Shown here piece after piece: positions 32,191 to 44,996 of a stretch of DNA of 64,000 nt (its first letter is position 1; each line of letters starts with the position of its first letter). A model generated the notes under the pieces. The model ran no database searches and was not told the DNA's origin. It worked only from the letters and a program-made list of their open reading frames with translations. The translations under genes were made by a program, and so were the position numbers. The DNA is from Basidiobolus meristosporus CBS 931.73 (taxonomy: Eukaryota > Fungi > Basidiobolomycota), in the NCBI GenBank assembly GCA_002104905.1, contig MCFE01000147.1, positions 1 through 64,000 of the forward strand, in the 5' to 3' direction.

Positions 32191-33108
32191 ATGGAGAATA
32201 AACGGGTAAGCCCGTTAGGGGTTTGTCATTGCCCGGCCGTCACCAACCGTTTTCCTTCCCACAGCACCGTGGCTCGTTTCACGCCCTGGACAATGCTCAA
32301 CAACCAGTAACCGAGATCGACCATTCGGAGGCTCCTTCTCCTTCGCGAGAAAAGCAGGCCCAGGTCGGGTCGGATGATAAATGCAAATGTCCCTCGGGAG
32401 ACGAGGATATCGACAATACTCTGGTATGTTGGGGGGGGGTGGACATATACACAGACTCACTGGACGTTTCGCTGATATTCCTGTTGATACCAAGGAGGAC
32501 CTCCAAACATTGGCCCAGAACCTCTTGCCCGAAACATACGACATTAAACGGAAGTTTCTTGACCCTACCATCCATGCTTTATTCACGTCCATGAAGAAGG
32601 AGTTGGAGAAGAAGGCGTTGAAAATCCTGCAGTTGACGGAGGAGCTTGAGGCGGTGAAATTCTCACCATCCAGGTAAATCCGCCACCCTGGCCAACCTTT
32701 CCCACCCTACTCATCCCACCCATATCTAGTTTGACTGGGAAACGTCTGCTGGCCAAGTGTCGCAGCCTGCAGCAAGAGAACGAGGGGCTGGGCAAAAGAA
32801 TGTGCCAAGGCCGTGTGGCCCAGTATGAGCTGGAGATCTCCATGCAGAGGAAATTGATCGACTCGTTAAAGGAAAAGATTCGAGGTAACCGTACCGTCAA
32901 CGCCAATAACCCCAATACCAGTACCAACATCACTAACCCATTCCATTCCATCGCATCACCAACCCAACCCCCTTCAGAATCTGACCATTGGATCGAACAC
33001 TTGGATACGGAGGTAGAGTCCTTACAATCCCGACTACTAAACCTACAATCCCGAGCGGATGCTTGCTCGAACAATCACCCGCCCAATACCACCACAGAGC
33101 CACGCTAG
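32191..33108 (+). CDS. WTAP: WTAP/Fl(2)d/Mum2 family m6A-writer regulatory subunit, 4 introns
   Basis: FLDPTIHALFTSMKKELE..LTEELEAVKFSPSSLTGKRLLAKCRSLQQENEGLGKRMCQGRVAQYELEISMQRKLIDSLKE..WIEHLDTEVESLQSRLLNLQ follows the WTAP pattern LDPAINL.F..MK.ELE..EL.AWKFTPDS.TGKKLMAKCR.L.QEN.ELG...SQGRIAQLE. Confidence 0.9.
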
Positions 33109-33140: not shown

Positions 33141-33985
33141 TTATTTGGGGGGCGGTCTTTTGTTTCCTTTGGCCTGCCCTCTGCAGGGGGTTCTCTGAGT
33201 CGACGAACGAGCGGACGAGCCCGAACCCGAACCCGACCCCGGTTTCCCGTAGAGCTTCGGGTTGGCGAAAACCTTCTTGAGCTGGTCCAGCAGGGAATTC
33301 CATTCGACGTTCAGAATGCCCGGCCGCGGTATGAACGCGTAGTCAAACCCTAGACGCAACGTAAACAAACCAAATAAACCTCTCGTTCGTGAAACGGTTC
33401 GATGCGCGCTTAGTGAAGTCCACTCTCCCCCGCTCCCGCTCCCGCTCCCTCCCTCCTCGACACACTACCCCTCACTCACCTGACTTCGCGTGCTCCGGCA
33501 TCACCTTGATCGTGGCTTGTCGCATGCGTCGACTCACCTGGTTTCGTACCACCGCCAGCTTGCTCACCCGCTTCTTGGAGACCAGATAGGTCACCCGGAA
33601 GGTGTTGATGGGTTTTTGGGTTTTCCTGGGTCGGGAGAAAGGTTTAGTCGCTTGAAGTAGGGTGGGGAAGGGAAAGGGGAAAGGGAAAGAGAAAGGTAGG
33701 TGGAAGTGGAAGCAGAGGTGGAGATGTGCGTGGATGTGGATGTGGACGTGGACGTGGACGTGGCCATGGTTAAGGACGAACCGACCTGCTCAACACCGTC
33801 TCGTTAAACTTCCAAGGGCGCGCCTTCAAGCTGAACAGGTCCGTGTGGATCTGGTAACCCTTTGCGCTCATGAGCTGAGGGATGAAATCCCCCGACACGT
33901 GGTGCAGCTGTTTCGCCCGACTCACGAAGGTCGGAAAGAATCCCATCTTGCCGATTCCAAGGGAGAATTTTCCCGTGGTGACCAT
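33141..33985 (-). CDS. rnpA: Bacterial-type RNase P protein subunit (RnpA-like), 184 aa, two spliceosomal introns, probable mitochondrial targeting
   Basis: Exons 33985-33786, 33625-33480 and 33349-33141 total 555 nt in frame: ..TFVSRAKQL..SAKGYQIHTDLFSLKARP..FRVTYLVSKKRVSKLAVVRNQVSRRMRQAT..AKSGFDYAFIPRPGILNVEWNSLLDQLKKVF. This is colinear with RnpA (R.G.TVAKK..AV.RNRIKR..RE..D.V..A+.G...L...L.K.). Confidence 0.85.
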
Positions 33986-34319: not shown

Positions 34320-34488
34320 TGTAAATGAGAACTTATCTAGTTTTCATGTTCTGGGTATCTGATATTTTGGTGAAAATATTCTAAGTAAATCCGACAAGGA
34401 ATTTGGTCAGTATTTTCTAGGATTTGTAGTAATCTAAGTGACTAAGTTGGGTGAATATTTAGGTGGAATTATGAATTTTTACATACAA
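34320..34488 (-). mobile_element. Partial Copia-A LTR marking the right edge of the gene island
   Basis: Matches ttttcatgttctgggta...gtgaatatttaggtgg of 40412-40761. Confidence 0.7.
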
Positions 34489-34871
34489 CAACAAGAGTAC
34501 TCCCAGCATGAGCTGAGACATAAAAGGTGGCCAAACCAGCAAGTTTTTTTTGGTGGGGGGGGGTATGGCAACAGAATGCATGTACCAATATTACATCAGA
34601 TGCTCTAGCTTCTGTCAGGATGCAACAATCTATCAGGGTTGTAGGTAGGTTGGTTGGTAATCATCACTGGGTTGGGTCATTTTTCTCCTTGGAGGCACCA
34701 CAATCATCCCTGGCAACCATTGGCTGGTTTTGTTGTAAATTCTAGTATTTACACCTAGATATTCACCTGATTTGGTCACTTGGATAATTGCCTACAGATC
34801 TTAGAGAATACTAGCCAATTTCCTTGTCAAGATTTACTTGTAGTATTTTCACCAGAACACCAGGTACCCAG

Positions 34872-35560: not shown

Positions 35561-35909
35561 TGTTGTAAAAATTTGTATTTCCACCTAAATATTCACCTAA
35601 CTTAGTCACTTAGATCATTACCTTCAAATCCTAGAGAATACTGACCAAATTCCTTGTTGGGATTTACTTAGAATATTTTCACCAAAATACCAGGTACCCA
35701 GAACATGAAAATTCTCAAAGTTGTCCAAACAGCCCCAAACTTTGCACACATGTTCTTGGGACCTTCCTTAACCTATTCTACGTGTTTGTAATGCCAAGAC
35801 CAGGTAAAAATATAAATATTACTTTTACATTCAATAAATCATTAAGTGAAAACCACATAATCTACTTGTTCTCCCAATCACTTCCAATATCTCCAAGACT
35901 CTTACAACA
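35561..35909 (+). mobile_element. Copia-A solo LTR inserted inside an older Copia-A LTR
   Basis: Full 349-bp TGTTG...CAACA LTR; near-TSD tgtag/tgaag; the host LTR resumes at 35910. Confidence 0.85.
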
Positions 35910-39960: not shown

Positions 39961-42900
39961 TGCTGTAAAAACTTGTAATTCCACCTAAATATTCACCTAA
40001 GTTAGTCACTTAGATCATTACCCTCAAATCCTAGAGAATACTGACCAAATTCCTTGTCAGGATTTACTTAGAATATCTTCACCAAAATACCAGGTACCCA
40101 GAACATGAAAATTCTCAAAGTTGTCCAAACTGCCCCAAAATTTGCACACATGCTCTTGAGACCTTCCTTAGTCTATTTTACATGTTTGTGATGCCAAGAC
40201 CAGGTAAAAGCATAAATATTACTTTTACATTCAATAAATCATTAAGTGAAAACCACATAATCTACTTGTTCTCCAAATCACTTCCAATATCTCCAAGACT
40301 CTTACAACAGGTTATGACCCCCAAGCTGTCACTCTCTGCAATGTCCACTACTGCTATTACTGGAATTCTTCCCTCTGCTGAAAAGTTGGATGGATCTAAC
40401 TACCAAGTGTGTGTTGTAAGAGTCTTGGAGATATTGGAAGTGATTGGGAGAACAAGTAGATTATGTGGTTTTCACTTAATGATTTATTGAATGTAAAAGT
40501 AGTATTTATACTTTTACATGGTCTTGGCATTACAAACACGTAGAATAGGTTAAGGAAGGTCCCAAGAACATGTGTGCAAAGTTTGGGGCTGTTTGGACAA
40601 CTTTGAGAATTTTCATGTTCTGGGTACCTGGTATTTTGGTGAAAATATTCTAAGTAAATCCCGACAAGGAATTTGGTCAGTATTCTCTAGGATTGGAAGG
40701 TGATGATCTAAGTGACTAAGTTAGGTGAATATTTAGGTGGAAAATACGAATTTTTACAACAGTGTGGAAGGTGAAAATGAAGATGCTGCTACAAGAAAGA
40801 GGCCTTTGGGATATTGTCATGGGAGAAGAATGTCCTCCTAAAAACATGGGAGAGGAAGCCTTGAAGTACCAGAAGAAAGAACAAAGTGCCTTTAACTGCA
40901 TTTGCCTTAATGTTAAAGACAAATTGCTAATTCAATGCTCAAGAGCAAAAACAGCAAAGAATGCCTGGAAGGCATTAGAAGACACCTACCAGTCATGTTC
41001 AGCTGCTAAGAAAATGTATCTGAGACAAAAATTCCTTACTACAAAGATGCTGCCAGGGGAAGATATGAAAAATCCAATTAACAGAATTACCCTGCTGGTA
41101 GATGAGATGGAATCTGTGGGCGTACCAACTACTGATGAGGATGTGATAGTTACCATCCTGAATAGCCTAACTGACAAGTTTCAGGGCCTTGTATCAGCCC
41201 TAGAGTCCAGAACTGAAGACTTGACCTGAAATTACATATATGGAAGGCTCCTGGATGAAGAATTAAGAAAATCAAGCGTCAACAAGAAGGAAGAAGAAAA
41301 TGCTTTAATAAGCAATGATAACCAACAAAGGAGGTACCCAAGACCCTACAAAGACAACAGCAACCTATTTTGCAACTACTGCAAAAGGAAAGGACACACA
41401 TCAGACCGGTGTCTCTAAAGGAGAGATTATCAGCAAAAGAAGCCTGAATATGGAAATGCTGCAACAACTGAAGATAGACTATTTATATCTGCACCAAATA
41501 TAACCACAAAAAGGATTCTCAGACGTGGTATATTGACTCTGGAGCTTCTCAACTCTTTATACATCAAAAAGAACTTTTTACCCAATATCAAGAAATTCCA
41601 ATTACAAAGGTTTTTATGGGTGACAATAGAACACTTGATGCAGTGGGAGAAGGTACTATCCAAGTAAACCTTAGAAGCAGTCAAGGAAGCCATACACTGG
41701 CCTTTAAAGAAGTACTCTATATATCAGAAATAGTTAAGAACCTACTCTCTGTAAGCAAGGCCACAGCAGAAGGACTCCTTTTCAGTTTTGACAATTCTGG
41801 ATGCAGGATCACTGATCAAAATGGTGCTCATATTGCTTTGGGCATCAGAGATCAGAATCTATACAAGTTGACTTATATTCCATCATATTTGGAAGCCAAT
41901 ATAAGTAACTTAAATGAAGAAACACCAATGCTTTGGCACAGGAGATTTGGGCACATCAATTTTGATTATTTGCGCAAAATGATCAAAGATCAGCTAATTT
42001 CTGAAGTAAAAATTGATCCCCCAGCTAATGTGGAGCACTGTGAAGCCTGCTTATATGAGAAACAAGCCAGACAACCGTTCAAGAGCTCTGGGTTAGCCAA
42101 AACCAAGAAAAAATTAGATCTAATTCACTCAGATCTGTGTGGACCTATGCAAAATTTATCCTTAGGTGGGATGAGTATTTAATCACTTTTATTGATGATT
42201 ATACAAGATACGCATGGTTCTACCTCATGGAGTGAAAGGAAGCAGTTCTGTCTAAGTTCAGGGAGTTCAAAGCCATGGTGGAGAGAGAAACTGGTCAAAA
42301 AATCAAGAAAACATGCTCTAACAATGGTGGAGAATATACCGCAAAATTCTTCATCCACTTCTACAAATTTCATGGGATAAAGCAAGAGACTACTGTACCA
42401 TACTTCCCACAGCAAAATGGAGTAGCAGAACATGCTAACGGAGCAATAATTGATACGGCAAGATCTATGATCCATGATCAAAAATTATCCTGAGATTTTT
42501 AGACAGAATTAGTTGCCACTCTTGTGCGCCTTAAAAATAGGAGTTAAAGCAGAATACTTCGTGATTCTACTACATTTGAAGCATGGCATGGATACAGACC
42601 AAGTGCAGAACATCTAAGAATATTTGGGTGTACAGCATATGCCAAAAAACTGGCCAGAAATCAGTCAAAATTTGAGCCAAAAAGTGTAAAATGCATATTG
42701 TTGGGCTATTGCAATGAGAGTAAGGCATACAGACTCTACAATTCCAAAGCAAAGAAGCTGATAAAGTCCAGGGATGTGTTGTTTGATGAAAATGCAAAAT
42801 TTTCACAAAAAATGACATCACATGATGACAAAAATCTGATCTCAAATCACCAATTGTCAGGATTGAATCAGAGCAAAACAATGAAAATCTTTTCACTCTA

Positions 42901-44996
42901 GAGGACTCTACAACCGTGGTTCAGCCAGAATCAGTGCCCAGGAATATCCCAGAAGTGATCATTCCAGTATCAAATGCCCAGAGATCCAATTGGACAAGAA
43001 ACAGCCCAAATTACTATATCAATGAGGGTACAAACTTAGCCTATGCCTATTCAGTCCATATTGATGAGCCCCAGACTGTAAAAGAGGCCCTAAATAGCCC
43101 TCAGACAAAGCTTTAGAGATCTGCAATGACTGAAGAATATCAGGCCCTGATGGAAAATCAAACTTGGGACTTAGTCTAATTACCATTCAACCAAGAATCA
43201 ATTGGATGCAGAATGGTCTTCAAGACAAAATACAAGGCTGATGGTACAATTGAAAGATACAAAGCAAGACCTGTAGCCAAAGGATACTCTCAAACAAAAG
43301 AACTTGACTATACTGATACCTTTGCACCGGTAGCCAAGTTTAATTCCATCAGATTAATATTGGCTATTGCAGCCCAATATAAGTTTTTTATTCATCAAAT
43401 GGATGTAAGAACTGCATTTTTGAATGGAGAACTTGATGAGGGCGCGTATATGGACCGGCATAATGGGTTTGTTGAAAAAGATAACCCCCATTTGCTCTGC
43501 AAGCTTAAAAGTCACTATATGGTCTCAAACAATCACCAAGAGCCTGGAATTGCAAGATAGATTCTTATTTGGAATCTTTGAGTTTCAAAAGGAGTAATGC
43601 TGACCATAGTATATACTATAAGCCAGATAGAGCAAATTCAGTTCTATTAGCTCTATATGTGGATGATCTTATTATAGCCACCAATGACCTATAAACATTG
43701 GAAGAGACTAAATCCAGCCTATTTAAGGAGTTCAAGATGTCCAATCTAGGAGAACTTAATTACTACTTAGGGATTAAGTTCTCCATAGACAGAAGTACCC
43801 AGACTATCACCCTAAGCCAATCCAAGTATATTCAAGATGTACTAAAGAAGTACAAAATGGAAGACTGTAAACCAGCAGCTACCCCAATGGAGACAAACCT
43901 TAACTTGGTCAAAACTCAACCAAATCAAGAGAGCTTGGTGCCATCTGAAAACTTTGACTCTCCTTATCAATCTATGGTCGGCAGTCTGATGTATATTATG
44001 CTTGGAACACGTCCAGATATCTCATATTCAGTGGGAGTTGTCAGCCAACATAATCAGAACTATGGATCTGATCATATTGCAGCAGTTAAGCAGATTTTTA
44101 GATACCTAAAAGGAACTGCTGATATCTGCTTAAGATACACTTATAAGGATTCAGAACAGGATCTTGTGGGATACTCTGATGCTGATTGGGGACAAAATTT
44201 AGAAGACAGAAGATCCACCAGAGGATACACCTTTCTTTACTGTAAAGGAGCAATTTCATGGAATTCAAGAAAGCAACCAACTGTAGCACTTTCTACCACA
44301 AAGGCAGAGTACATGGCAGCCTGTGAAGCTACAAAAGTAGCAATGTGGTTAAGAAAGCCTTTTACAGACTTGGGCCTATGTCAAAAAACGCCTATTACTT
44401 TATTTTAAGATAATCAAGGATGTATACAATTAGGTGGAAATCCAACTTTTCATGCTAGAACCAAACACATAGAAATTAGACATCATTTCATACGTGAAGC
44501 TATAGTGAATAACTTAGTTTGCTTAGTTTACTGTCCTACAGATGAAATGATTGCAGACATATTCACCAGAGCATTAGCTAGGAACAAGTTTGAATAACTT
44601 AGGTCAAAATTAGGACTAGTCAGTATGAACATATAGCTGAGTGGGAGTGTTGTAAAAGTTTGTAGTTACACCTAAACATTCACCTAACTTAGTCACTTAG
44701 ATCATTACCCTCATATCCTAGAGAATACTGACCAAATTCCTTGTTGGGATTTACTTAGAATATTTTCACCAAAATACCAGGCACCCAGAACATGAAAATT
44801 CTCAAAGTTGTCCAAACTGCCCCAGACTTTGCACACATGCTCTTGGGACCTTTCTTAGCCTATTCTACATGTTTGTAATGCCAAGACCAGGTAAAAGTAT
44901 AAATACTACTTTTACATTCAATAAATCATCAAGTGAAAACCACATAATCTACTTGTTCTCTAAATCACTTCCAATAAATCCAAGACTCTTACAACA
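39961..44996 (+). mobile_element. Full-length but defective Ty1/Copia retrotransposon (family A)
   Basis: 349-bp LTRs 39961-40309 and 44648-44996; PBS ggttatgacccc; gag with CNYCKRKGHTSDRC knuckle; WYIDSGAS protease; LWHRRFGH; LIHSDLCGPM integrase; YVDDL RT; GYSDADWG RNase H; PPT gagtgggag; TSD atata/atatg. Many stops and frameshifts. Confidence 0.96.
40412..40761 (-). mobile_element. Inverted Copia-A solo LTR inserted in the gag of the same family
   Basis: Perfect TSD GTGTG (40407-40411/40762-40766). Removing it restores KLDGSNYQVWKVKMKMLLQERGLWDIV. Confidence 0.95.

Follow-up and report, generated by a model that had tools for sequence, protein, structure and literature searches.

Reviews describe bacterial RnpA as absent from eukaryotes save for a few algae and one jakobid, and nuclear RnpA has been described by function in prasinophyte algae and by sequence in the jakobid Andalucia godoyi (PMC4919922, PMC7050145). 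The protein of the prasinophyte Ostreococcus tauri, whose organelle genomes encode bacteria-like P RNA, works with organellar P RNAs and complements a rnpA mutant of E. coli (Lai et al. 2011, as cited in PMC4919922 and PMC7050145). The RnpA of A. godoyi is divergent, nuclear-encoded and mitochondrion-targeted, was proposed to be the partner of the bacterial-type P RNA encoded in the mtDNA, and was interpreted as an ancestral trait of mitochondria kept in scattered lineages; the same paper counts RnpA among the features that eukaryotes have lost or show in a highly punctate pattern, and mentions no fungal example (PMC7050145). The nuclear-encoded protein of the RNA-based mitochondrial RNase P of Saccharomyces cerevisiae is Rpm2p, a 119 kDa protein found in budding yeasts only (PMC3790967, PMC3287206), and PRORP is absent from fungi (PMC10941002).

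In a 64-kb stretch of the Basidiobolus meristosporus CBS 931.73 genome, referred to below as the window, we identified a nuclear, intron-containing and transcribed gene for a bacterial-type RnpA. Its product is colinear with bacterial RnpA/C5 proteins (PF00825, TIGR00188; structures 1a6f, 1nz0, 6d1r and 3q1q) over the whole fold of about 110 residues, with which it shares the DF motif of helix alpha1, the SKK strand, the A-V-x-R-N-x-x-x-R-R-x-x-R helix and the D-[YF]-x-x-I strand. Unlike the bacterial gene, it is nuclear, is interrupted by spliceosomal introns and does not lie beside rpmH, and the fungal protein has three additions: a loop of 13 residues that separates beta2 from beta3, the NPKLY motif and a C-terminal tail that is basic and rich in Gly and Ser. 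The bacterial RNR motif reads RNQ in B. meristosporus, and the partner RNA and the activity are putative. The likeness to the algal and jakobid proteins, both nuclear RnpA homologues as well, is one of description; the algal protein has been functionally shown and may serve plastids, whereas the fungal one is known from sequence and may act in mitochondria or elsewhere, and A. godoyi belongs to a different supergroup from fungi. With Rpm2p the fungal RnpA would share the role but has no relation in sequence or fold. Our literature searches returned no report of RnpA in fungi, although a mention in comparative surveys of 2005/2015 is possible, and the family appears to be undescribed in the searchable literature though visible in databases.

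Gene model, transcript and start codon

The gene lies on the minus strand (33985-33141) and consists of three exons and two introns. Exon 1 (33786..33985) aligns with the N-terminal RLKxRxDF...G...FVL part of bacterial RnpA and encodes helix alpha1 (SGDFIPQLMSAKG, 33895-33857) and the DLFSLKARPW strand (33841-33812). Intron 1 (33626..33785; 160 nt, GTCGGT...CCCAG) is in phase 2. Exon 2 (33480..33625; 146 nt, 48 aa alone) encodes strand beta3, FRVTYLVSKK, and the RNR-motif helix, SKLAVVRNQVSRRMRQA (33564-33514), and is followed by the phase-1 intron 2 in codon Gly116 (33350..33479; 130 nt, GTGAGT...TCTAG). Exon 3 (33141..33349) contributes strand beta4, GFDYAFIPRP, helix alpha3 with the fungal NPKLY motif (33308-33249), the basic low-complexity tail (33248-33144) and the stop codon (33143-33141). 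As the preliminary description had proposed, removing two GT-AG introns gives an open frame of 184 aa. Joining 33985-33786, 33625-33480 and 33349-33141 confirmed a 555-nt frame of 184 codons plus stop with all the quoted motifs present, and the splice dinucleotides are in place (GT at 33785/33784 and AG at 33627/33626; GTGAGT at 33479 and TCTAG ending at 33350). The first in-frame ATG (33985-33983) is preceded, two codons upstream, by an in-frame TAG. The longest single ORF at the locus has at most 75 codons, so the gene exists solely as a spliced model. Both introns are longer than those of the orthologues (160 and 130 nt vs 50-83 nt) and are packed with simple repeats, of the CCACGT/CCACAT type in intron 1 (33659-33776) and of the GGGAGC type in intron 2 (33420-33470).

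No run labelled as RNA was found, and transcript evidence came from a public run of contigs (X3, 27 Mb) which is labelled 'DNA?' but behaves as RNA, as three GT-AG introns of the plus-strand neighbour gene are removed in it. In its contig record 15, position 33624 is joined straight to 33785 with 0 mismatches, which is exactly the removal of intron 1, and the letters of this intron are present in the DNA runs X1 and X2. The contig ends at 33948, after which it continues into adapter sequence. The removal of intron 2 was not seen in this record, the one RNA contig that covers the gene. The expectation that cDNA would be spliced as modelled thus holds exactly for intron 1 and not for intron 2, which is kept in the sole contig and is the weakest point of the gene model. 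Reading through intron 2 meets an in-frame TGA after two intron codons, and the translated product would end after KSGE, without beta4 and alpha3.

The same contig runs the RnpA-like gene together with the neighbouring WTAP-like gene; the stop codon of the latter is at 33108, 33 nt away from the stop of the former. This WTAP/Mum2-like gene (PF17098; 32373-33108, plus strand) converges on the RnpA-like gene so that their transcripts overlap tail to tail, and its introns 32423-32493, 32672-32727 and 32883-32975 are spliced out in the RNA contig. Since the contig joins both genes and their stops are so close, the 3′ UTR of the WTAP-like gene must cross exon 3, and it has probably supplied the unspliced path over intron 2.

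Comparison with Basidiobolus ranarum showed that pS between the two species is saturated (about 0.9-1.0), while pN amounts to 0.10 in exon 2, to 0.22 in both exon 1 and the exon 3 core, and to 0.58 in the tail. By these estimates the gene is under purifying selection. The B. ranarum frame opens with MAFFNTLV... (L039:1457), and there is no ATG between this point and a stop 11 codons upstream. This Met corresponds to the second in-frame ATG in B. meristosporus (33944..33946; MGFFPTFV...), Met14 of the 184-aa model. Codons 14-25 after ATG 33946 (LHH[VI]SGDFI.QL) carry 9 synonymous and 2 non-synonymous changes between the two species and are therefore coding, and the first ATG (33985) is not conserved in B. 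ranarum. The first ATG is thus doubtful and the true start is probably the second one, just inside the end of the RNA contig at 33948, which would give a product of 171 aa and not 184 aa. The public B. ranarum model K7432_013422 (P0127, 141 aa; JASJQH010001325.1) begins 25 codons too late; the constrained frame opens 25 codons earlier (L039:1457-1531) and includes helix alpha1, and the public model is therefore truncated.

The choice of the start codon matters for the argument, made in the preliminary description, that the acid-free first 30 or so residues point to mitochondrial import. Counted from Met1, the first acidic residue is indeed D33, with 4 K+R in the first 30 residues, but this count depends on the first ATG. 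From Met14 the N-terminus is colinear with bacterial RnpA from the first residue (M...RLKxRxDF vs M...QLHHVSGDF) and has no extension, and the presequence argument therefore loses force for B. meristosporus. N-terminal extensions of 60-70 aa are found in the orthologues of Syncephalis fuscata, Rhizophagus irregularis and Cetraspora, and their starts are basic, hydroxylated and acid-poor.

Identity as a bacterial-type RnpA

Several lines of evidence agree with the initial identification of the protein as RnpA. Exon 2 alone passes the PF00825 profile with 25.7 bits (E 1.2e-5, profile positions 39-74; gathering cutoff 22.3) and scores 23 bits against TIGR00188, for which the cutoff of 38.35 applies to the whole protein; its sole PDB sequence match is an RNase P protein. 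The spliced product scored 78 bits over residues 37-145, spanning all three exons, against a local HMM of 107 bacterial-type RnpA sequences, a score somewhat favoured by the retrieval of these sequences with the fungal profile. The fungal orthologues score 42-49 bits against PF00825, with P0127 at 45.4 bits over profile positions 25-107. Against TIGR00188 (cutoff 38.35) the scores are 38.5 for P0127, 38.0 for Syncephalis plumigaleata and 29-37 for the other orthologues.

The RNR-motif helix of B. meristosporus, AVVRNQVSRRMRQ (33564-33514), follows the pattern A-x-x-R-N-x-x-[KR]-R-x-x-[RK]. All columns that are invariant or at least 90 % conserved in 117 sequences (R39, K46, A53, V54, R56, N57, R61 and D80 in P0127 numbering) are present in the B. 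meristosporus protein, which also conserves the Phe of the alpha1 DF motif. Its RNR motif has Gln in place of the second Arg (RNQ), where the other fungi have RNR or RAR, and in Glomerales and Rhizopus the Asn is replaced by Ala.

The predicted structures of the orthologues were in line with this identification. The AlphaFold model of P0127 (pLDDT 84.6) aligned to RnpA structures with TM 0.6-0.71, and that of the S. fuscata core (pLDDT 91.4; elements H7-15, E20-22, E26-32, E51-56, H66-87, E92-98 and H107-120) reached TM 0.82 and rmsd 1.9 A to B. subtilis 1a6f, the best value among the models. Significant PDB fold matches of the orthologue models were bacterial RNase P proteins only, and 30/30 of the Swiss-Prot fold matches among those listed were RnpA. 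The models thus support an RnpA fold for the orthologues, a result that is supportive and not independent as the input alignments held bacterial RnpA.

Orthologues, shared introns and origin

The profile search recovered full-length relatives, all with PF00825, from B. ranarum (P0127), S. fuscata and S. plumigaleata (P0004, P0005), Rhizophagus clarus, R. irregularis, Cetraspora, Funneliformis and Acaulospora (P0128-P0131, P0135) and Rhizopus microsporus (P0145); a phmmer word search with P0005 returned nothing beyond P0005 itself. The preliminary view that few eukaryotes have nuclear RnpA needs widening by these homologues in Zoopagomycota, Glomeromycotina and Mucorales, A. godoyi being a further eukaryotic case (PMC7050145). 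P0127, which was annotated independently, aligns without gaps across both junctions of our model (...ETVL[ST]RKTQ... and ...EHAKSGFDYAFIPR...).

Five annotated orthologues from three lineages (B. ranarum, S. fuscata, S. plumigaleata, R. irregularis and Rhizopus microsporus) were mapped as exact spliced alignments, and all have an intron at the codon and phase of intron 2. This shared phase-1 intron sits in the codon before D-[YF]. The exon with the RNR helix is exactly 150 nt long in B. ranarum, both Syncephalis species and R. irregularis, and the upstream intron of these four is in phase 1, 4 nt upstream of intron 1 in B. meristosporus. Here the whole intron has slid, with both donor and acceptor 4 nt downstream (33626-33785 vs L039:1614-1676), so that the CCAG which opened the exon ancestrally now closes the intron, exon 1 has gained GCAG and the RNR exon measures 146 vs 150 nt. 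The slide leaves the protein length the same with a single change, Thr to Ser, and the moved junction is backed by the RNA contig. Placing intron 1 at the position used by the other fungi was rejected, as there is no AG at the needed acceptor and the contig fits the modelled junction with 0 mismatches.

In public protein collections, a 58-aa ORF fragment (P0001) is the sole record of the B. meristosporus gene, which is thus apparently missing from public annotation. The fungal homologues in databases carry precomputed PF00825 matches under names such as "hypothetical protein", and an ESM Atlas cluster of 77 members, 82 % of them with PF00825, is made up entirely of Zoopagomycota. The best AFDB cluster match, A0A1R1WYN4 (32 % identity), is auto-named "Ribonuclease P protein component". 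Longer uncharacterised AFDB proteins also match the RnpA-like model with E 1e-5 to 1e-6 (A0A427XU57, A0A0H2RSI7, A0A067PA87, U4L8Z4, A0A2V3ILM8, A0A7R9T508 and A0A7S1TKG6). Some of these may come from Dikarya, a red alga and marine protists; if so, the family would reach well beyond early-diverging fungi. Two metagenomic proteins, P0002 (residues 55-78) and P0003 (residues 30-59), have in-frame insertions exactly at the positions of intron 2 and intron 1, respectively. Judged by position only, a prokaryotic gene caller has probably translated straight through short introns at these places, and P0002 and P0003 would then be genes of uncultured fungi filed as prokaryote-style ORFs.

The surroundings of the gene are eukaryotic. 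A neighbour ORF shares 99 % identity with SRD5A1 as annotated in B. meristosporus CBS 931.73, and the 154-kb scaffold also carries the WTAP/Mum2-like gene, a RhoGAP gene and a copia-type element. The ORFs of this retroelement (GAG-pre-integrase, Pol beta-barrel, RVT_2) lie at 41616-44408 on the plus strand, about 8 kb from the RnpA-like gene. Just upstream of the gene we noticed an inverted pair of a repeat of about 150 bp (34341-34487 and 34731-34871), with further copies at 35561-35711, 39961-40111, 40610-40761, 44648-44798, 4634-4760 and 62614-62676. Its word depth in the DNA runs is 745,318 vs 167 in the single-copy flank (about 4000x), so it is a very abundant element, perhaps a MITE, a TIR or a piece of an LTR.

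The phylogenetic tree held 111 sequences, and its 11 fungal rows fell into one group (SH-aLRT 92). The internal order of this group follows taxonomy, with one subgroup each for Basidiobolus, for Syncephalis and for Rhizopus together with Glomeromycotina. The group adjoins a set that contains all labelled Alphaproteobacteria, Rickettsiales and Micavibrio; the joining branch is weak (support 15), and the bacterial sample is biased, having been picked by similarity to the fungal profile with a single peptide pattern. The best bacterial genome matches were likewise Micavibrio, Alphaproteobacteria and Rickettsia. The shared intron and the single fungal group place the gene, with at least one intron, before the split of Zoopagomycota and Mucoromycota, and indicate an old gene inherited vertically in fungi. 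An alphaproteobacterial (mitochondrial) origin of fungal RnpA is consistent with the data: a fungal family with an ancient intron that groups by alphaproteobacterial RnpA would most simply derive from the mitochondrial ancestor, with the gene moved to the nucleus before the lineages split.

Possible role and alternative readings

We consider it fairly probable that this vertically inherited, nuclear bacterial-type RnpA is the candidate protein of a mitochondrial RNase P based on a P RNA encoded in the mtDNA. Its most likely role, as we infer from the established knowledge of RnpA (summarised in PMC4919922), would be that of protein cofactor of a bacteria-like mitochondrial RNase P. Three points from the literature lead to this reading: fungi lack PRORP (PMC10941002), Rpm2 occurs in budding yeasts only (PMC3790967), and rnpB is encoded in some zygomycete mtDNAs, namely those of Smittium, Mortierella and Rhizopus (PMC3630166, table 1). 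The protein would enter mitochondria, where the RNR-motif helix would bind the catalytic domain of the bacteria-like RNase P RNA encoded in the mtDNA, and the complex of the two would act as the mitochondrial RNase P, cleaving polycistronic transcripts at tRNA 5′ ends. In the window no P RNA was found (Rfam, no RNA family matched), and our literature searches found no paper linking Basidiobolus with rnpB.

RnpA is a bacterial protein family and Basidiobolus is said to have received many bacterial transfers, so we considered that a bacterium might have donated the gene to Basidiobolus recently, or that the assembly is contaminated with bacterial DNA. Either is hardly credible for a gene with two spliceosomal introns, one of them confirmed by RNA, which stands between eukaryotic genes on a 154-kb scaffold and has orthologues with the same intron in other fungal phyla, all fungal sequences forming one group; the earlier dismissal of contamination on the grounds of introns and fungal neighbours is borne out. 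The retained intron 2 raises another alternative, in which the gene is a decaying or poorly expressed relic that normally keeps this intron and makes a non-functional product cut short after exon 2. The sole transcript contig, with its TGA two codons into the intron, speaks for it. However, the exon 3 core is as constrained as exon 1 (pN 0.22 in both, against saturated pS), exon 3 aligns with orthologues in three lineages and the position of intron 2 is conserved. The contig is moreover merged with the WTAP-like gene, the 3′ UTR of which probably gives the unspliced path, and contigs retain the commoner path and drop the rarer variant. For these reasons the retention of intron 2 does not refute the gene model, and we regard a relic as improbable.

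A more serious question is whether a true RnpA homologue works, or works solely, with a P RNA encoded in the mtDNA; its partner could instead be another RNA or an imported nuclear P RNA, or it could serve in other mitochondrial RNA processing. Rhizophagus, Funneliformis, Cetraspora and Acaulospora conserve copies, and the mtDNAs of Glomus/Rhizophagus and Gigaspora have no rnpB (PMC3630166). Glomeromycotina thus keep a well-conserved RnpA-like protein despite mtDNAs without rnpB, and the two do not strictly co-occur. In the arbuscular mycorrhizal fungi, the gene has five exons and a long N-terminal extension (P0128-P0131, P0135; L040:3001-3927). A different partner would also fit with the lack of a clear presequence on the Basidiobolus protein, with the fungus-specific 13-residue loop, NPKLY motif and basic tail added to the bacterial core, and with the Asn to Ala change in the RNR motif of Glomerales and Rhizopus. 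Yet the RNA-binding helix and the fold are strongly conserved, and the protein is also present in taxa with a bacteria-like mitochondrial rnpB, i.e. Rhizopus, and Smittium if the top AFDB match is from there. Highly reduced rnpB genes are, besides, easily missed in mtDNA annotation. On balance we hold a different or additional partner to be possible but rather unlikely, and prefer the reading of the protein as cofactor of an mtDNA-encoded P RNA. As a tentative and less likely extension of the preferred reading, alphaproteobacterial RnpA may have been kept in the nucleus throughout early-diverging terrestrial fungi as a subunit of a bacteria-like mitochondrial RNase P; in arbuscular mycorrhizal fungi the protein would then pair with an imported or unrecognised P RNA, or would have turned into an RNA-processing factor that does without one. 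If true, mitochondrial RNase P would take a hitherto undescribed form there.

The presence of RnpA in fungi with rnpB-less mtDNA, namely arbuscular mycorrhizal fungi, which have no PRORP, raises the question of how tRNA 5′ ends are cut there. For early fungi in general, fungal RnpA is the best candidate for the protein partner of the RNA enzyme that trims mitochondrial tRNAs. Among the proteins of RNA-based mitochondrial RNase P in fungi outside the budding yeasts with Rpm2, there is now a candidate subunit that is small and easily expressed, and the RnpA family provides one more marker of what the fungal mitochondrion has inherited from Alphaproteobacteria.
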